Shown piece after piece: positions 3,634-50,376 of a DNA stretch of 64,000 bases. The position numbers and the translations under genes were made by a program. Each line of letters starts with the position of its first letter. Within the stretch, counting starts at the first letter, position 1. The notes under the pieces were generated by a model. That model was not told the origin of the DNA. It saw nothing but the letters and a program-made list of their open reading frames with translations, and did not search any database. The DNA is from Eukaryota sp. TZLM1-RC (Eukaryota; Protista; Metamonada: BaSk clade): the NCBI GenBank assembly GCA_040285825.1, contig JAUPSS010000004.1, forward strand, positions 1,455,485 through 1,519,484, in the 5' to 3' direction.

Positions 3634-4536
3634 CTATAGATACACTTCGATTGTACGGCCGAGTCCTTCTAAATATTCTGCAATGTCCAAATCACCACAA
3701 TTATGGTCCAGCTTGATGGTTGTCAAGGTTTTATTTAACTTTAAAGAGTCAACAATTGCAATCAAACCATCATTCTCAATGCAGTTATGGCTCAGATCAA
3801 GAAATGTGAGGGATTGATTAACCATGAGAGATTCAGCAAGAGCCAATGCAGAGTTATTCGTGATCCCAGTTCCTCCAATTCCTAAGACGGTCAGCGACGT
3901 ATTGACCATTAGTGAATTGGCTATGGCCTCAACTGCCTTATCTCCTAAACAATTATTACCTAAATGCAAGGTTTCGAGTGTCTTATTATCTACTAGAGCC
4001 TCTGCAAACGCCAACCCTCCTTTACTTCCTATATCATTGTCATCTAGTCCAAGATAACTTATGGCTGAGTTGTATTTTAAGGAATTCGCAATGGCAATCG
4101 CTCCATTATCATTTGAGATTGTACTGATCAGATTAGCACTCAAAAATAACTGCTTCAATGTATTGTTGTTGAGAATCGACTGTGCGATTCCTTCTGCTCC
4201 AACAGGTCCAATATAATTCCCATAAAAAGCAAGACATTCAAGTGTGTGGTTCAATGCCAAACCATTAGCTATTGCCAGAGCACCTTCATGACCTATCTGG
4301 GTTGCACCTAGATTGAGAGAGGTCACAGGTAGGTTTAAAGACAACATCTGTTCAATGGCTCCAACTTCAGCTTTATTCAACTCTATCCAACTGAGATTGA
4401 GTTGAGAACATCCATCGAATATTTGATCAATTGCATCAAGTATGTAGTCATTGAGATCGGTGAGGGAAACAATAGACTTTAAGTGTTCTAGAAAAGATTC
4501 CTTTGATAATAAATGATTCACATGTGAAGAGAACAT
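3634..4536 (-). CDS. Ribonuclease-inhibitor-like leucine-rich-repeat protein
   Basis: 300-aa ATG ORF with 28-aa LRRs of the type LxxNxTLxxLxLxxNxIGxxGAxAIA. Confidence 0.92.
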   Translation of the reverse strand: MFSSHVNHLLSKESFLEHLKSIVSLTDLNDYILDAIDQIFDGCSQLNLSWIELNKAEVGAIEQMLSLNLPVTSLNLGATQIGHEGALAIANGLALNHTLECLAFYGNYIGPVGAEGIAQSILNNNTLKQLFLSANLISTISNDNGAIAIANSLKYNSAISYLGLDDNDIGSKGGLAFAEALVDNKTLETLHLGNNCLGDKAVEAIANSLMVNTSLTVLGIGGTGITNNSALALAESLMVNQSLTFLDLSHNCIENDGLIAIVDSLKLNKTLTTIKLDHNCGDLDIAEYLEGLGRTIEVYL

Positions 4537-4544
4537 GTTAATTA

Positions 4545-4665
4545 AAGGTACTGTGTGTAGTGCTCAGTTTTCAAAGTGTTGTTTGAATTGTGGGAAACAT
4601 TTGTTTATGTGGGACATTCCCATAATTGCACGATGTATTTTCGTGCGGAACAATTACATAGACTA
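4545..4665 (-). ncRNA. Candidate Fanzor omega-RNA scaffold / element right end
   Basis: Directly 3' of the Fanzor stop codon. Stems: GCACGA/TCGTGC (4628-33/4641-46) extended by TAATT/AATTA; TGGGA/TCCCA (4610-14/4618-22); TTCAAA/TTTGAA (4570-75/4582-87). The position matches where TnpB/Fanzor omega-RNAs are encoded; the RNA identity is inference. Confidence 0.4.
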
Positions 4666-5145
4666 ACTTTTACTCAAATAATGAGGCCTTTCTATACCTC
4701 TCATTCTCGCTTCAGCAATCGCAAACATATTCAGAAATACCAACTTATTTCTATTTAATAGGTTTCTTTCACCATTGTTACTTGATTTACAATTATCATT
4801 ATTGCAAGCTAATAAATCATGGCATGTAGTGCCGGCTTTTTTTTCTCTCTGATAAAATCCTGGATTTTTGACTTTCAAGAAAGCTCCCACTCTTTCAAAA
4901 CAAACAGGACATTTTGCTGAAGTTAATGCTTCATTGATCATCAATACTTCAAAACCATTTCTCTACAGAAACTGAATCCATCCAGTTCTTCTAGTAGGCC
5001 AATGACGTTTTAAATTCTTGGAACCATATTTACCATAATCACCCATTAGAATTAAAATGTCTTTGGGATGCCAAGCTTTTGAACAAAGCTGTTTAACAAC
5101 CAACTTTCATTCTGTTGCTTGTGAATAAAAGCTTGCATATTATGA
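4663..5145 (-). pseudogene. Fanzor1 (TnpB-like RNA-guided nuclease) C-terminal fragment
   Basis: Manual translation: NMQAFIHKQQNESWLLNSFVQKLG/fs/HPKDILILMGDYGKYGSKNLKRHWPTRRTGWIQFL*RNGFEVLMINEALTSAKCPVC...CHDLLACNNDNC...LLNRNKLVFLNMFAIAEARMRGIERPHYLSKS. Covers the bridge helix, RuvC-II (E in INEALTS), 4-Cys Zn finger, RuvC-III (NRD changed to NRN) and terminal RPxYL motif. Confidence 0.85.
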
Positions 5146-5383
5146 ATGCTCCACAAGTCAATTCTATATTCTATTGTCAAATATATATAAATATTGCCAA
5201 AGTTTGGCAACCACAAGGTTTGAGAACTCTGAAATGGTTGCGGAATTCTGTAGCTAAAACCTCACATTTATTCTTATCAAATTAGATTTGATTCGCCATA
5301 AGAACCCCTCTTTTTGAACTATTCGCCTTCAAGTAATGAAGAAACGGTTTCTGAAAAAATAACAAAAACAAAATTTATAGAGA

Positions 5384-6268
5384 CTATTGAGGAATATCTA
5401 CCAAATCTACAAAATCCAAACCTCTCAATTGATCTAGCATATCAACTATTCCAACATCCAAAACTTCAGCATCATCAGCCTTACACCAATCATAATACTC
5501 TTGGAGAAAGGCAATAATCCGGGATGCAGGAACCTGGTCAACATTGGAATCTACACAAACGGTGAGCATATACTCTTCTTCAAGGCAGGGCTTCTTGCGG
5601 TACTCCTGAGGAAGGTAATACTCGAAAGCGAGGCGGCGAAAACCCTTGGAACTCCAAAATCCACGAGCAGAACCACTATAGGGATCAAGACTTACTTCAG
5701 CGAAATAGAGAGGTTTCTCAGCAAACTTACCATCTACATGAATCATACTATCCTTCCATACTCTGGAGGCTAGTCCTTGACGCTTGTAATCAGAATGAGT
5801 GGCAAGATAACCAATGAGCACACATTCGTTATGAGGAAATACATCAATTGAAACACCACATACAACCTGGTTCTCCTCATTTGTAATGAGAGAAACATGG
5901 CAATGTGGCTGAGTTTCATCATAATGGCTGAGATGAACACACTCATTTTCAACAGGATCATCCTTAAATGTTGTCCGAAGCAAACTAATCCAGCCAGGCG
6001 CGAGTTCTTTACGCTGCGGAAGGGTAGCATACTTGTACTTGGCATCTGTGAGATCTAATGGCAATGAAACCTGCTTGTTTGGGAGTACCAATGTTGACCC
6101 AAACGTACTCGGTTTTTTCTTACGCTTCTTTACACCACGGGAACAGCCTGTGATTTCTGAGGAAGAAGAACCGTCATTCTGGAACATAAAACAGCTGGAG
6201 GTAGAGAGCAACAAGAGGAGAGTAAAATGGATTACTGGTTCGCATCTTTCAATTTGATGTCCTTTCAT
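5384..6268 (-). CDS. GNAT-family acetyltransferase
   Basis: 294-aa ORF with acetyl-CoA motif A YLATHSDYKRQGLAS and motif B ARGFWSSKGF; true start may be downstream (MFQND). Confidence 0.85.
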   Translation of the reverse strand: MKGHQIERCEPVIHFTLLLLLSTSSCFMFQNDGSSSSEITGCSRGVKKRKKKPSTFGSTLVLPNKQVSLPLDLTDAKYKYATLPQRKELAPGWISLLRTTFKDDPVENECVHLSHYDETQPHCHVSLITNEENQVVCGVSIDVFPHNECVLIGYLATHSDYKRQGLASRVWKDSMIHVDGKFAEKPLYFAEVSLDPYSGSARGFWSSKGFRRLAFEYYLPQEYRKKPCLEEEYMLTVCVDSNVDQVPASRIIAFLQEYYDWCKADDAEVLDVGIVDMLDQLRGLDFVDLVDIPQ

Positions 6269-20279: not shown

Positions 20280-21140
20280 ACTATCACCATTCAGTAAGTT
20301 CTGGGTTAGCGGCTCTCAATTTATCCATTTCCGTGTTCTTGAATGCTTTTCGCTCTTGTTCCTTAGTATATTTGTCAAAACACGAGCCTGTGGTGCAACT
20401 TTTACTTGGAAGATAAAGTGATGAGTTGAGGCAAAATTCAAGATCTAGGTCTTAAGCGTTTCCGTAGTTCCAAAGCCGAAGTTTGAAGGGATTTTGTACA
20501 CCACGTGGAAGTATTTGTGCTCAGGGTAGTGAAAGACCTGTATATTTGCAAAGAGCAAAGTCTGAAGAGGAAGGTGGTAAGAAGAATCATTATAGTAAAA
20601 GAAAAGCTACCCCAAGATGATAAGAAATCAGTCTTTCTACATCGGCAGAGAGACCACTTTCATAGTTCTTTATCAAACTATGACAAACCCTATATCTGTG
20701 CACATTGTGAAAAGCCACTTGTGAAGAAACATATTCAAAAACAAAGTTTATTAAAAATCCATGTTGGAAATGAATTTTCACACAATGACATCATCAAAAA
20801 TTCAATATAAACAAAAAAATTTTTAAAAATAGATTTAACGGTAACGAGCTGCTTTTGACATTTGAAGGAAAAAATAATGATTGAGAAAACACAATTAAAC
20901 CAAACGAATTGCCGAAAAGGAAAAGAAGAACAAAAAAAGACATAAAGACCGACCCTGATAAAAACAAAATTAATGTTTTGTTGAATAAATGTACTAAAAA
21001 ATAATTTGTCGAAGACGCAGGCAATCACTCGAAATAATATCTGATAGGCCTCTCATCGGCGTTGATCTGGGCCAATCTAGGTAAAGTGGTTATTTCTTAA
21101 ACGATATCCAATGTGAAGTTATCCCTTGTCCAACAAGGTT
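20280..21140 (+). pseudogene. Degenerate Fanzor1-like relic, copy 1 (to RuvC-I)
   Basis: FNGNELLLTFE...K-rich linker...LIGVDLGQSR (21055-21081); about 20700-21135 is a diverged paralog of about 22185-22620; left boundary uncertain. Confidence 0.5.
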
Positions 21141-21199
21141 GAGATTGATTTATAGACTATTTTAAAAGAAACTAATGTTTCGGTCTGGACAAATTCATG

Positions 21200-22815
21200 C
21201 TTAAAGAAGGTCATATCACATCACAGCAGCGGAAAGACTCATGAAACTTGTAATTCTTAAACAATTTGTCCATTTTTACGAAAATCATTCTAAGATGAAG
21301 TAGACCACTTCTAATGGTGGACTATATGAAGATGGTACTCTGTTCTGGCGAGGAAGAGAACATCAGGCTATACGGAAGGAATATTCCAAGGACTGCAGTG
21401 ATTCACTAGTCAACAGAATGTTACTTAGAGTGTTCAATCCGAAAAAGTGAGTTACGACAGCAACTAGTAGTTTTGGTGTCAAATCAGCCCTTTTAGACAG
21501 TTCCCCGAGACTGAAAAATTGATGTGTGAAGTCCACAATGTTTGTGAAAGAAATGAACCCTTAGCCCAACCCGAAGAAGTAGTTTAGAGTTGGACAAAGA
21601 TCGACTCGAAATTTCGAGTTGCGACTTCACTCGAACTTGACTCCAGTTGAGTCCAGTTCAAGTCGAGTTCAAGTTGTGATTTTTCCAGACTCGAGTTCGA
21701 GTTGAGTTCGAGTTTTAGTAGACTCGAAATCTGGTATCAAATTTAGTTTTTTTTCAATGCATTTTCCCTGGAATAAAAGAGGTTCACTTAGACACCGTCT
21801 TGATAAGCTTTTTGAGGGTTTTATTACAGTGTTCGAGTTGAGTTCGAGTTTTGCCCAACTCTAAAGTAGTTGTTGATTCTGTTCTTGAACACTACATCAA
21901 TTTCAATCTGAATAATTCAAGAGAAAGATTCTTTTTATTAAATGCATGTAATTTTATCTTGAATCTCCTTTAAAAATTTCCTCCCACTGCTTTCTCTACT
22001 GTCTTCACATGATAGAATCACCTTTTCATCAAAGGAAATTGGTGAGGTTTTTCTCTTTAGACTTAAACTTTCACAATACTTACTCACTTTCGTTTCTCAT
22101 ATGCATTGCTGGAAGAAATTTAGAATAATACCGTTAGCTTCTCATAAAAGTTCTAAATTTTTTGAGGTTCCTTGTCATGTTTTCCACTGTGTGAAAAAAT
22201 TTCCGCTTATTGAAGTTTCATCTTCCAAAACAAAGTTTATCAAAAATACATGTCTGAAACGAGTATTCAAACAATGTCCTTACCAAAAAATTAATATCAA
22301 CAGAAAATGTTTGAAAAAAAGATTTGAAATTTTTTTATTGGTAATGGTAATGAACTGCTTTTGACCTTTGAATGTAAAAATAATGAATCAGAAAGCACAG
22401 ATAAGCTGAATGAACCACCGAAAAAGAAACGAAGATTGAAAAAAGAAATAAAAAGTGACCCCGATGCCAACAAAACCAGAGAAACACAGTTGAAGGGCAC
22501 TAAAAAAATGTCCCGTCAAAATTGTACCTGAAAGGCTTCTTATTGGCATTGATCTGGGCCAATCTAGATTATGTGGTTACTTCTTAAATGATAACCAATG
22601 TGATTTATACCTTGTCCAACTGGCAGAAGATACATGACAAAACCTTCACCCAGTGAACACCCTCCCAACCAATATTCCGTTCAAAATTACAACCAATTTT
22701 TGAACAATTGGAATTTGTTTAGGAGTAAAGTGTACTTGGAAAGTAGTCGTCAGAAATGAAAAATTTAAATTTGATAACCGCAGATAAAAAGAGAGACGGT
22801 TCAGAGAGAGCCTCC
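21200..22815 (+). pseudogene. Degenerate Fanzor1-like relic, copy 2 (to RuvC-I and bridge helix), interrupted by MITE
   Basis: KKFRIIPLASHKSSKFFEV...FIGNGNELLLTFE...RLLIGIDLGQSRLCGYF (22542-22568)...SVQNYNQFLNNW...KFKFDNRR*KERRFRE, in Fanzor1 motif order; frameshifts and stops; left boundary uncertain. Confidence 0.6.
21585..21863. mobile_element. Non-autonomous hAT element (MITE), 279 bp
   Basis: TIRs TAGAGTTGGACAAA / TTTGCCCAACTCTA (13/14 match); perfect 8-bp TSD AAGTAGTT at 21577-84 and 21864-71; clustered TCGAG/CTCGA subterminal repeats. Confidence 0.93.
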
Positions 22816-40521: not shown

Positions 40522-43127
40522 ATACCAGACCTATTCAGTAACACTTTTTTGAAATTTTCCAAAAAGTGCAACCCTGAAGGTCCAATATTGCCAAAAAGAG
40601 AAATTGCAAACGGCACAAACTGATATTTCACATGTTCCACTCTACCTAACTGTGCCAAAGGTTCTTCATATTTTTTTATCTTCTTTTTTTCGGCGTTAGA
40701 TAACGGCGAATCAGCGGAATACATTAAACGAGCAGCAGAATTTTTGCAAACATCAACTGAGACAACATCTACAACATTGAGAACACCATCGATCCCTGGA
40801 GCTACTAAATCTGCCCTTCTTTTACCAAAGGAATCATCAGTTTGATCTGAAGACAGCTTACGTACTAGTGGCTCAATAAATGCCTCTGTATTGAAACTTT
40901 TGCACATAGCATATAATTGATCACGAACTGAGTCATGAACAATTGAGCGATAAGTTATAAAATACTTACAGTTTAAAATATGGGAAAGCGTAACAACACT
41001 CTTGCAGCGACAAATTAAATCATTTGGTAATGAACAAGGCCATAGAAAACATCTCATTCTCATTGCAGTGGTCCATTGGTGATCATTAAGTAGAAGGCCA
41101 TAAATGTTGGGAATTTGGGAGATTAAGCAACTTGAGCAACTGTCTTCAAGATCAATCAAAAAGTTTGCAAAAACGGGATTTTTTTCCTTATCCAAGCTAA
41201 GACGTACAATATAATCCAAGTTTTCTAAAACTTTCAAGATTTTTTTCTGCAATTTTGCAAAAGTCAATGGTAAGGAGAGCAAGCTTCTTGAAGGAAGTTC
41301 CACAATATCAGAGGGGAAACATTTAGCCCAAATATTGGGTGAAAGAGTTTCAATTTCCTGTTGCAAAGAAATAAGATAGGAGCTGCCACAATTTTTAATG
41401 AGATGAATTTTTCAGGAAAACGATTCAAAAATTCATAAATAAAATTCTTTCCACCTCCAATAAAGGCAGCTTTACAAAGGTAGCTTGATTTGTGAAAATC
41501 AACACCACCAAAATTTGTACCACAAAAAATGTGGCTTCGTAACTGAGATGCATCAATTTCCAATAATTTTGCTAAAAAATTGGTTCTTTGTTCATTAAAA
41601 ATGCGACAAAACTCCAAAGAAATTGATGGTGATGTTGATCTCAAAATATGAGTAAATTTTCCAGAATAACAGATTTTTAGGAAAAAGAATTTCAAATGTT
41701 TCTCAATAATTAAATTTTCTATTGATTCTAATTCATTTCCAAATTTTATTTATTTATTGAATTTGCACACTTGATTAAATTAAATCATAACTAATGGGGC
41801 GACTATCATTAAACCAAGATTTCCTCTACAAAATCTTGATTTGCTTGCTGTCTAGCAAAAGCTTCTCTAATTCGATTGAAAAACCGCGGTAATCTATTAA
41901 TAATGGCAAATTGAATCCGTAACGCCATAAAAAAATATCAAATCTTTTCATTGTTTTTTCTTTCACCATTTTTTGGAAGTCATCCAAAAAAGTTTCTGCT
42001 TCAACTGATAATCTTCCATTTATCGAAAATGGGAAAGCAATAAAAACCAGCTGTGTATTTCTATCGACATTTGCATCTTCAATTTCCTTATCATATTTTC
42101 TATGTTTTTCTTTTGCTTTAAAATCCAGAGCAGCCACAGGATTAAGTTTTCTTCTTCATTATTATTCATTTCCAACTTGAGTCAACATAGTCGAAAGTTG
42201 GCCTTTGACTTCTTCAATATTTCCGAGATAACAACCCAAAAAACGAAAACCAGACTGATCATAATTGATAAAGGGGACATTGACATCATTAATGAAAAAA
42301 ACAATTGGTTCATGGCCAATAATTAAACATTTGGAGATATTCAATGAGAGACCAATATCTTCATAACGCTGTTGAATAAAAGTTGCTATTTGTTTCAGAA
42401 TTGTAATAGGAGCAATTACAGAAATGTCATCCATATATGCCACAATATCTATTTCTGGGAATTTTTCTTTCAATTCGCACATTAATGGATGAATTGCCAG
42501 ACAAAAGAAAAAAGGACCAAGTGGATCACCTTGTTTTACACCTGAAGACGAAAACAGGCCAAGGTTTTCATAGACCAATGTGGATGATTTTCCATAAAAC
42601 CTGTCATTTAGAACAAATATATTTATTGAACATGCACACTGAATTAAATTAACTCATAACTAATGGGACGACTATCATTGAAGACATGATTTCCTCTACA
42701 AAGTCTTAATCTGCTTGCTGTCTAGCAAAAGCTTCTCTTATTCGATTAAAAAACCGAGGTAATCTATTAATAATGGCAAATTGAATCCGTCAATGCCATA
42801 AAAAAGTATCAAATCTTTTCATTGTTTTTCTTGCACCATTTTTTCGAAGTCATTCAAAAAAGTTTCTGCTTCAACTGATAATCTTCCGTTTATCGAAAAT
42901 GGAAAACAATAAAAACTAGCTGTGTATTTCTACCAGCATTAGCTTCTTCAATATCTTTATCATACTTTTTATGTTGATCATTTGCTTTAAAATCAAGAGC
43001 ACTCACAGGATTAAGTTTTCTTCTGTGAACCAAAGTATTATTTGCAACATTTCCAATTTTTAACATTGGAATTTTACCAACCCATCATCCAATAGATTTT
43101 GGTTTTGCTTTCCTGTTTTCTGCATGT
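40522..43127 (-). mobile_element. Composite CRE-like non-LTR cassette, copy 1 (family A with nested family C fragments)
   Basis: GVKQGDPLG and AYMDD RT; CRC..HILNC, HDSVRD, RRADL, VVD, EKKKIKKY RLE; 41215-43293 is nearly identical to 48466-50535. Confidence 0.9.
41743..42163 (-). mobile_element. 5'-truncated family C retro-fragment nested in family A with 12-bp TSD
   Basis: ATTCATTTCCAA at 41731-42 and 42164-75; empty site at 48423; ORF KEKHRKY...FPFSINGRL. Confidence 0.85.
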
Positions 43128-47003: not shown

Positions 47004-50000
47004 TTTTTTTTAAAAACTGGAATATTTATTGAGATAAAAATAACCATCTAGAATTCAATATCCTCCAAACAAGCGTCACTATTACTGAACCTACTTACAG
47101 CATTACGTTCATATTCTACACCAATAGCTCAAAGTGCCTTTGAAATCATTGTTGGAATAGACTTGAAAATGCAAAAAACAATTCCATTTAACCAGAAAGT
47201 GGAGTTCATTGTTTTACCAGACCTATTCAATAATACTTTTTTAAAATTTTCCAAAAAGTGCAACCCTGAAGGTCCAATATTGCCAAAAAGAGAAATTGCA
47301 AACGGCACAAACTGATATTTCACATGTTCCACTCTACCTAACTGTGCCAAAGGTTCTTCATATTTGTTTATCTTCTTTTTTTCGGCGTTAGATAACGGCG
47401 AATCAGCGGAATACATTAAACGAGCAGCAGAATTTTTGCAAACATCAACTGAGACAACATCTACAACATTGAGAACACCATCGATCCCTGGAGCTACTAA
47501 ATCTGCCCTTCTTTTACCAAAGGAATCATCAGTTTGATCTGAAGACAGCTTACGTACTAGTGGCTCAATAAATGCCTCTGTATTGAAACTTTTGCACATA
47601 GCATATAATTGATCACGAACTGAGTCATGAACAAGTGAGCGATAAGTTATAAAATACTTACAGTTTAAAATATGGGAAAGCGTAACAACACTCTTGCAGC
47701 GACAAATTAAATCATTTGGCAATGAACAAGGCCATAGAAAACATCTCAATCTCATTGCAGTGGTCCATTGGTGATCATTAAGTAGAAGGCCGTAAATGTT
47801 GGGAATTTGGGAGATTAAGCAACTTGAGCAACTGTCTTCAAGATCAATCAAAAAGTTTGCAAAAACGGAATTTTTTTCCTTAGCCAAGCTAAGACGTACA
47901 ATATAATCCAAGTTTTCTAAAACTTTCAAAATTTTTTCTGCAATTTTGCAAAAGTCAATGGTAAGGAGAGCAAGCTTCTTGAAGGAAGTTCCACAATATC
48001 AGAAGGGAAACATTTAGCCCAAATATTGGGTGAAAGAGTTTCAATTTCCTGTTGCAAAGAAATAAGATAGGAGCTGCCACAATTTTCAATGAGATGAATT
48101 TTTTCAGGAAAACGATTCACAAATTCATAAATAAAATTCTTTCCACCTCCAATAAAGGCAGCTTTACAAAGGTAGCTTGACTTATGAAAATCAACACCAC
48201 CAAAATTTGTACCACAAAAAATGTGGCTTCGTAACTGAGATGCATCAATTTCCAATAATTTTGCTAAAAAATTAGTTCTTTGTTCATTAAAAATGCGACA
48301 GAACTCCAAGGAAATTGATGGTGATGTTGATCTCAAAATATGAGTAAATTTTCCAGAATAACAGATTTTGAGGAAAAAGAATTTCAAATGTTTCTCAATA
48401 TTTAAATTTTCTATTGATTCTAATTCATTTCCAAATTGAGTCAACAGAGTCGAAAGTTGAGTCGGAGTTTTCTAAAACTTTCAAAAAAAATTTTCTGCAA
48501 TTTTGCAAAAGTCAATGGTAAGGCGAGCAAGCTTCTTGAAGGAAGTTCCACAATATCAGAGGGGAAACATTTAGCCCAAATATTGGGTGAAAGAGTTTCA
48601 ATTTCCTGTTGCAAAGAAATAAGATAGGAGCTGCCACAATTTTCAATGAGATGAATTTTTTCAGGAAAACGATTCACAAATTCATAAATAAAATTCTTTC
48701 CACCTCCAATAAAGGCAGCTTTACAAAGGTAGCTTGATTTGTGAAAATCAACACCACCAAAATTTGTACCACAAAAAATGTGGCTTCGTAACTGAGATGC
48801 ATCAATTTCCAATAATTTTGCTAAAAAATTGGTTCTTTGTTCATTAAAAATGCGACAAAACTCCAAAGAAATTGATGGTGATGTTGATCTCAAAATATGA
48901 GTAAATTTTCCAGAATAACAGATTTTTAGGAAAAAGAATTTCAAATGTTTCTCAATAATTAAATTTTCTATTGATTCTAATTCATTTCCAAATTTGATTT
49001 ATTTATTGAATTTGCACACTTGATTAAATTAAATCATAACTAATGGGGCGACTATCATTAAACCAAGATTTCCTCTACAAAATCTTGATTTGCTTGCTGT
49101 CTAGCGAAAGCTTCTCTAATTCGATTGAAAAACCGCAGTAATCTATTAATAATGGCAAATTGAATCCGTAACGCCATAAAAAAATATCAAATCTTTTCAT
49201 TGTTTTTTCTTTCACCATTTTTTGGAAGTCATCCAAAAAAGTTTATGCTTCAACTGATAATCTTCCATTTATCGAAAATGGGAAAGCAATAAAAACCAGC
49301 TGTGTATTTCTATCGACATTTGCATCTTCAATTTCCTTATCATATTTTCTATGTTTTTCTTTTGCTTTAAAATCCAGAGCAGCCACAGGATTAAGTTTTC
49401 TTCTTCATTATTATTCATTTCCAACTTGAGTCAACATAGTCGAAAGTTGGCCTTTGACTTCTTCAATATTTCCGAGATAACAACCCAAAAAACGAAAACC
49501 AGACTGATCATAATTGATAAAGGGGACATTGACATCATTAATGAAAAAAACAATTGGTTCATGGCCAATAATTAAACATTTGGAGATATTCAATGAGAGA
49601 CCAATATCTTCATAACGCTGTTGAATAAAAGTTGCTATTTGTTTCAGAATTGTAATAGGAGCAATTACAGAAATGTCATCCATATATGCCACAATATCTA
49701 TTTCTGGGAATTTTTCTTTCAATTCGCACATTAATGGATGAATTGCCAGACAAAAGAAAAAAGGACCAAGTGGATCACCTTGTTTTACACCTGAAGACGA
49801 AAACAGGTCAAAGTTTTCATAGACCAATGTGGATGATTTTCCATAAAACCTGTCATTTAGAACAAATATATTTATTGAACATACACACTTAATTAAATTA
49901 ACTCATAACTAATGGGACGACTATCATTGAAGACATGATTTCCTCTACAAAGTCTTAATCTGCTTGCTGTCTAGCAAAAGCTTCTCTTATTCGATTAAAA

Positions 50001-50376
50001 AACCGAGGTAATCTATTAATAATGGCAAATTGAATCCGTCAATGCCATAAAAAAGTATCAAATCTTTTCATTGTTTTTCTTGCACCATTTTTTCGAAGTC
50101 ATTCAAAAAAGTTTCTGCTTCAACTGATAATCTTCCGTTTATCGAAAATGGAAAACAATAAAAACTAGCTGTGTATTTCTACCAGCATTAGCTTCTTCAA
50201 TATCTTTATCATACTTTTTATGTTGATCATTTGCTTTAAAATCAAGAGCACTCACAGGATTAAGTTTTCTTCTGTGAACCAAAGTATTATTTGCAACATT
50301 TCCAATTTTTAACATTGGAATTTTACCAACCCATCATCCAATAGATTTTGGTTTTGCTTTCCTGTTTTCTGCATGT
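47004..50376 (-). mobile_element. Composite CRE-like non-LTR cassette, copy 2, with poly(A) and 16-bp TSD
   Basis: T8 at 47004-11; GTTTGTATATGGCAAC at 46988-47003 and 50377-50392; open RLE ORF 47129-47929; RT fragment 49411-49827. Confidence 0.92.

Follow-up and report, generated by a model that had tools for sequence, protein, structure and literature searches.

The question raised by the present locus is what occupies the interval between a gene for a GNAT acetyltransferase and a gene for an LRR protein in a protist genome, and whether that something is still a gene. The interval lies within a 64-kb stretch of DNA, called here the window, which is a part of the contig JAUPSS010000004.1 (6.9 Mb) of the assembly GCA_040285825.1. 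The NCBI organism name of the source is 'Eukaryota sp. TZLM1-RC'; TZLM1-RC is the strain that serves as the type of the free-living flagellate Skoliomonas litria (Metamonada; PMC11603281). An earlier note, made from the letters of the window alone, had proposed at this place an unannotated C-terminus of the eukaryotic nuclease Fanzor1, situated between two host genes.

As far as the surroundings are concerned, the proposal agrees with the annotation. No gene call is present in the NCBI annotation of the interval between the GNAT and LRR genes, and the two neighbours are supported as host genes by both Pfam and NCBI, all three features being oriented on the same, i.e. minus, strand. The stop codon of the GNAT gene is found ~130 nt upstream of the 5′ boundary of the relic, which fills the gap between the two genes. 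The start codon of the LRR gene, as read from the sequence, is the first ATG past an in-frame TGA at about 4564–4566. With a probability of about 0.9, the stretch 4600–5257 on the minus strand represents a dead, 5′-truncated Fanzor1 relic in the nuclear genome of S. litria TZLM1-RC. The coordinates of all the features concerned are collected in Table 1.

Table 1 Features of the Fanzor1 relic and its flanks; positions are those of the window
Feature	Position	Strand	Basis and remarks
LRR (RNI-type) protein, 300 aa; downstream host gene	3634..4536	-	Pfam LRR_6 5.6e-20; NCBI-annotated gene
Host flank, from the right end of the element to the LRR start codon	4537..4606	-	Unique to the locus; conservation in the alignment ends after TCCCA(C/T)A
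Whole Fanzor1 relic, ~650 bp; 3′-terminal part of an element of the exonuclease-Fanzor1 type, 5′ end cut off	4600..5257	-	blastn and tblastn
Conserved non-coding tail past the stop, ~56 nt; right end, candidate omegaRNA scaffold	4607..4662	-	Common to L002, L009, L010, L012 and the L001 solo copy; partly L003
Open 93-codon tail of the Fanzor ORF with TAG stop; RuvC-II Glu, TNB zinc finger, RuvC-III, RPxYL end	4663..4944	-	ORF; PDB, HMMER and clade-profile matches
RuvC-III position, Asn (AAT) in N-R-N, ORF N66; canonical Fanzor1 has Asp	4747..4749	-	Invariant, 12/12; WNRN of GtFz1 in the same column
TNB zinc-finger cysteines CxxC...CxxxxC (ORF C12, C15, C47, C52)	4789..4911	-	Near-invariant columns in the clade alignment; aligned to cysteines of PpFz1 and SpuFz1
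RuvC-II catalytic Glu, codon GAA, within LMINEALTSAKCPVC	4930..4932	-	Aligned to the Glu of LIDEFRTSSFCPKC in PpFz1 and to the SpuFz1 Glu; invariant in the clade alignment
Nonsense mutation, in-frame TAG; L002, the closest copy, has Lys (AAA) here	4963..4965	-	Alignment to L002
One-base deletion shifting the frame; cccaaag here vs cccgaaag in L002	5060..5066	-	Alignment to L002
Second frameshift; 4 extra bases in the window relative to L002	5185..5200	-	Alignment to L002; upstream of the range given in the earlier note
GNAT acetyltransferase, 267 aa as called; upstream host gene	5384..6268	-	Pfam Acetyltransf_1 6.7e-5, above the curated cut-off; NCBI-annotated gene

Assignment to Fanzor1

The open reading frame of 93 codons reads LMINEALTSAKCPVC...TTCHDLLACNNDNC...LLNRNKLVFLNM...GIERPHYLSKS up to its stop codon, and it carries the motif of Fanzor1 proteins, in which the RuvC-II glutamate is followed by TSxxCxxC. 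The order of motifs that had been read from the letters—the RuvC-II Glu, the cysteines CxxC...CxxxxC, N-R-N and the RPHYL end—is present in full.

Searched on its own against the PDB, the ORF was found to match two distinct sequences only: PpFz1, the Fanzor1 from Parasitella parasitica (PDB 9cf0; E=2e-7, residues 1162–1252), and SpuFz1 from Spizellomyces punctatus (PDB 8gkh; 4.5e-3). The alignment spans the ORF from end to end, including the Glu, the cysteines, the N-R-(D/N) triplet and the C-terminal RP motif. In an exhaustive HMMER search of 1.8 billion representatives, 54 matches were obtained, the best one coming from the same genome (a protein of 207 aa; 70% identity, E=3.4e-34). A profile was built from a clade of 12 sequences originating from two Skoliomonas genomes; against the PDB, it retrieved PpFz1 (4.9e-39), SpuFz1 (1.9e-32) and GtFz1 from Guillardia theta (PDB 9cer; 4.2e-6), with no entry of Fanzor2, TnpB or Cas12 at E≤1. 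No Pfam family was matched by the three ORF pieces of the relic, the relatives gave just weak matches to Cas12f1-like_TNB, and the 46-aa upstream piece had no match in the PDB.

Judged by these sequence comparisons, the relic is the C-terminus of a Fanzor1. The claim of the earlier note thus stands, all the structures matched being Fanzor1 and none of them Fanzor2, TnpB or Cas12; the check it had suggested, profile searches against structures, led to Fanzor1 proteins with the RuvC Glu and NR(D/N) positions aligned and not to unrelated zinc-finger proteins. The best structure matches of the clade profile, PpFz1 and SpuFz1, come from Mucoromycota and Chytridiomycota, respectively, and share with the relic the C-terminal succession of RuvC-II, TNB zinc finger, RuvC-III and RPxYL, both its order and its spacing being equal.

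Extent and decay of the copy

Comparison by blastn with six copies from the same genome gave 74–79% identity over a stretch that starts at 5247 (5257 with L009, 5220 with L010) and ends at 4599–4649. When the 54 Fanzor proteins, five of them carrying RuvC-I, were compared with the 64-kb window by tblastn, the sole stretch matched was 4669–5247. Neither blastn nor tblastn revealed any other Fanzor copy or any RuvC-I or REC-like sequence in the window, and the stretch 20280–22815 gave no tblastn match to these proteins even at E≤5. The relic thus retains the last ~195 Fanzor codons together with the non-coding tail of ~56 nt, while RuvC-I, WED, REC and the left end are absent; the RuvC-I motif, (C/I/V)DPGK, is present in the relatives P0003, P0004, P0006 and P0017. 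The range 4663–5145 given originally is Fanzor sequence, but its limits proved too narrow, since the homology extends from 5247/5257 down to 4600–4610 and takes in a second frameshift.

The reading frame itself bears several lesions. The 93-aa ORF, the upstream TAG and the one frameshift that had been pointed out before are all confirmed by the sequence and by the alignment to L002; upstream of the one-base deletion, which falls at about 5063–5066, the shifted frame gives ...HKQQNESWLLNSF... and ...HKQQNESWLLNSFVQKLGIPK. With RuvC-I and everything upstream of it lost, and with one nonsense mutation and two frameshifts in the remainder, the nuclease cannot be made. The locus is therefore, as far as can be judged from its sequence, a fragment of a member of the Fanzor1 family, i.e. 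a pseudogene and not a functional member. A peptide made from the 93-codon ORF may have retained some function, this being conceivable because the ORF is open and its dN/dS versus other copies is low.

Two other explanations of the interval have to be weighed against the one of a decayed Fanzor1 copy. It could be a zinc-finger ORF of unrelated origin that resembles the Fanzor motifs by chance, with which the lack of a Pfam match for the ORF would agree; yet the ORF has been aligned over its full length to the solved C-termini of Fanzor1, including the Glu, the four cysteines, N-R-(D/N) and RPxYL, and ~650 bp of the DNA are 74–79% identical to other Fanzor copies. The chance of such a resemblance is negligible, the matches in the PDB, HMMER and clade-profile searches refuting it. 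It could also be the exon set of an intact Fanzor gene, spliced or recoded, that was overlooked in the annotation; introns occur in this genome, and the last 93 codons are open. Six other copies as well as the relatives, however, read through at the TAG and at both frameshift sites; the homology ends at 5247/5257, with an intact GNAT gene ~130 nt further upstream; and the 64-kb window is elsewhere devoid of RuvC-I or REC-like sequence. A missed intact gene is contradicted by the lesions, by the limit of homology and by the absent RuvC-I and REC, and is thus very improbable, albeit slightly less so than a chance resemblance. The reading as a truncated Fanzor1 pseudogene is the one followed below.

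It is worth mentioning that, in the copy of the window and in the copy L003, the homology breaks off at one and the same place (AATTC[A/C]GCAAC), window position 5247 corresponding to 6046 in L002 and 5804 in L003. The lineages of these two copies diverged under selection, and the copies L009, L011 and L012 extend more than 600 nt further upstream. The limit common to the window and L003 may represent a recurrent point of truncation.

The asparagine at the RuvC-III position

The RuvC-III Asn had been taken in the earlier note for a lesion, one transition away from the Asp codon GAT. This part of the note has to be withdrawn: the Asn (N66 of the ORF) is invariant in all 12 sequences of the clade, covering two Skoliomonas genomes, and Asn also stands in the subfamily consensus, Asp occurring at this position in one copy and replacing the first Asn in one copy. 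The dN/dS between the window copy and L002 is 0.14 for the ORF (91 aligned codons) and 0.43 for the upstream pieces, which means that most of the divergence between the two arose while the gene was under purifying selection. In the alignment to the clade profile, the WNRN of GtFz1 falls on the same column. For GtFz1, the natural triad of which is D-E-N, it was shown that N658 supports DNA cleavage and that the substitution N658D lowers it, whereas the D606N mutant of SpuFz1 exceeded the wild type in activity (Xu et al. 2024, PMC11423790). The reading of the Asn as a decay mutation or as the mark of a dead nuclease is thus rejected by the invariance in the clade, by the subfamily consensus and by the biochemistry of GtFz1, and the asparagine is, by all indications from the alignments, a selected state of the family and not a lesion of the relic. 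It should not be taken as a sign of a dead nuclease; by analogy with GtFz1 and SpuFz1, the D-E-N clade from Skoliomonas would be compatible with DNA cleavage.

The non-canonical D-E-N triad links the Skoliomonas clade with GtFz1, the DNA cleavage by which is experimentally established (PMC11423790), although GtFz1 is much more distant from the clade (E=4.2e-6) than the Asp-type proteins from fungi (1e-32 to 1e-39). Since the clade is far closer to these Asp-type proteins than to GtFz1, its Asn was probably gained independently of that in GtFz1. Among the fungal relatives, Fanzor1-like proteins from Coemansia have Asn at the RuvC-III position, whereas their counterparts from Mucorales have Asp, so that the D-E-N triad, as aligned, recurs in no fewer than three lineages of eukaryotes distant from one another, namely Skoliomonas, Coemansia and Guillardia. 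The Coemansia spp. sequences (Kickxellomycotina; P0021, P0024, P0037 and P0047) carry this Asn in the segments FNRNEAAVMNF and YNRNLAAVLNF.

In a wider context, Fanzor, TldR and the TnpB of IS200/IS605 are distant descendants of a common ancestor; all of them combine a zinc finger and a split RuvC, and their guide RNA derives from the 3′ end. TldR has suffered losses in RuvC and is nuclease-dead, an implication that the Asn of the Skoliomonas proteins does not have.

The right end and the non-coding tail

Past the stop codon of the relic, the copies share a tail that is non-coding. From the alignment of the copies, the right end of the subfamily is located ~56–60 nt past the stop codon, and it is the relic that fixes this end relative to the stop. 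An element reaching as far as the ATG of the LRR gene was considered and rejected, because seven copies have no common sequence beyond about 4607.

The tail contains a hairpin, GCACGA-N7-TCGTGC, in which 4646–4641 pairs with 4633–4628, and a palindrome, GGGAAT(G/T)TCCC (GGGA..TCCC), at 4621–4611. Its divergence amounts to 18–23% of sites in comparison with 36–42% at the third codon positions of the last 45 codons, the difference reaching p of about 0.03–0.04 in three of the five comparisons and no significance in the other two, the comparisons being non-independent. Two pairs of the hairpin still pair after changes on both sides. RNAalifold, applied to six tails, gave many invariant pairs, just two double-sided changes and a positive covariation term, this being too little for a claim on structure; the z-score of the fold is −2.15. 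Rfam, run on 4300–5400, returned nothing but one chance snoRNA-like match (E=0.96).

[quoted passage not shown] By analogy, the tail of the relic would comprise both the right end and the scaffold of an omegaRNA, the parent having presumably been a nuclease that was guided by an omegaRNA and had a D-E-N triad in its RuvC. If an omegaRNA were made at the relic, its guide would be the first 15–20 nt of the host flank at 4537..4606.

Next to the window, at L001 15730–15853, i.e. ~1193–1316 nt before the first base of the window and on the strand of the relic, there is a solo Fanzor tail of 125 nt. It consists of the last ~23 codons, the stop codon and the non-coding tail, is 88% identical to 4733–4610 of the window, and has the same end point. 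This solo tail is the closest relative of the copy in the window, and its downstream neighbour is a convergent gene.

Some minor observations can be added on the end motif. In the window, it is repeated within the host flank (4616–4607 and 4599–4586), reading ATGTCCCACA at the end and ATGTTTCCCACA 7 nt later, and a similar local duplication, ATGGGATATTCTGAT / ATGGGATACTGAT, exists in L012. At 4037–4050 of L012, a degenerate tail is followed by a second motif resembling the right end, ATGGGAATTTCCCA. Perhaps this is one more solo right-end relic preceding a same-strand gene; the ATG of a gene for a P-type ATPase (4111) comes 74 nt later.

Position with respect to host gene starts

The right end of the relic (about 4607–4600) is situated 64–70 nt upstream of the LRR ATG, in the sense orientation. 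In the copies from the window, L002, L003 and L010, i.e. those of the subfamily in which the end could be placed, the right end precedes the ATG by about 29–75 nt and does not coincide with it. The next downstream gene is on the same strand in 7/8 copies from TZLM1-RC, the exception being the solo tail, and in five of the seven same-strand cases the distance from the Fanzor stop to the start codon of that gene is 71–137 nt, all these copies forming a sample biased to gene-called fragments. As for the sister strain TZLM3-RCL (GCA_040285805.1), three copies face convergent genes, and two have same-strand starts 40–51 nt past the stop.

The relic would be, at present, an inert spacer or, at most, a part of the upstream region of the LRR gene. 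A more active role is nevertheless conceivable, either as a 'ghost' locus producing an omegaRNA, the guide of which would come from the LRR flank and which an intact Fanzor would use in trans, or through inclusion in the LRR gene's promoter or leader. A promoter or leader role would explain why the 3′ part was kept and the 5′ part lost. In favour of an active role of either kind, there are the better conservation of the tail than of the third codon positions, its two hairpins with some compensatory change, the same-strand genes following 7/8 copies in TZLM1-RC, five of them at 71–137 nt, and the ghost omegaRNA loci of S. punctatus, which are functional without a Fanzor gene (PMC10432273). Against an active role, there is no intact Fanzor among the TZLM1-RC proteins found; an active ancestor alone can account for the conservation of the tail; the z-score of the fold is only −2.15; the solo tail, at a distance of 5.9 kb, has a convergent gene for its downstream neighbour; and the gaps between tandem genes elsewhere in L001 are 27–126 nt long, short spacers being apparently common. 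Where short spacers are common, any intergenic insertion would be expected to land near a start codon, and the placement observed here may reflect just the compact genome. An active relic is, on balance, unlikely.

Much the same degree of doubt applies to the family-wide version of this idea, according to which the sense, promoter-proximal placement would characterize the family and not result from a filter of survival, the relics supplying ghost omegaRNAs or regions of upstream control to host genes. It is because of the compact genome and the bias of the sample that targeting or exaptation is given a low probability. Should it be true, it would define a lineage of D-E-N Fanzors that carry an exonuclease in fusion and home to gene starts. 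The inert relic, which is the reading preferred here, resembles the ghost loci of S. punctatus (Saito et al. 2023) in that the region of the right end and omegaRNA has been kept with no working Fanzor ORF. The ghost loci, however, have both inverted repeats and a defined length of ~550 nt, while the relic has no left end, still contains ~195 decayed codons, and its omegaRNA is only a candidate.

The Fanzor family of Skoliomonas

The relic and the solo tail in L001 are not the only traces of the family in the genome. At least 25 fragments of the same subfamily, 115–351 aa long and annotated as 'hypothetical protein', were found in TZLM1-RC, in accordance with the expectation of the earlier note that this genome hosts, or hosted, a Fanzor family; taking the fragments, the relic and the solo tail together, the family is multi-copy in a eukaryotic genome. 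Many partial Fanzor copies are known also from S. punctatus (PMC10432273). Genes with a DNA-polymerase-B exonuclease domain precede L009 and L010, which are longer copies, and in P0006 (1281 aa) the DNA_pol_B_exo1 domain and Fanzor are combined in one protein. The full-length proteins found, 940–1846 aa long and belonging to clusters of several members, come from the sister strain TZLM3-RCL only, and all the full-length genes found there are exonuclease–Fanzor fusions, P0006 and P0077 being examples; among the proteins found, none from TZLM1-RC is a full-length Fanzor.

With regard to PpFz1 and SpuFz1, the Skoliomonas proteins thus differ in several respects: they have Asn instead of Asp at the RuvC-III position, their longer representatives either contain a PolB-type 3′–5′ exonuclease domain as a fusion or have one encoded upstream, and their host is a metamonad flagellate, the relic itself being a truncated pseudogene. 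In the literature searched, no paper was found that deals with Fanzor together with Skoliomonas or Metamonada, and the large Fanzor surveys do not mention metamonads. The relic, by itself an ordinary transposon fossil, documents Fanzor1 in the Metamonada, a host lineage for which the literature searched contains no Fanzor description. The intact exonuclease–Fanzor genes of TZLM3-RCL are the objects of greater interest.

Two of the gene models deserve a remark. P0068 (351 aa, TZLM1-RC) combines a phosphorylase domain, PNP_UDP_1 (PF01048), with a fragment of Fanzor, and is probably a merge made by the gene caller from a relic and the host gene downstream of it. In the chimeric model P0041, the non-Fanzor residues 42–121 match two repeats of the window (41985–43084 and 49255–50333, minus strand) with 62–80% identity, this being a repeated element unrelated to Fanzor.
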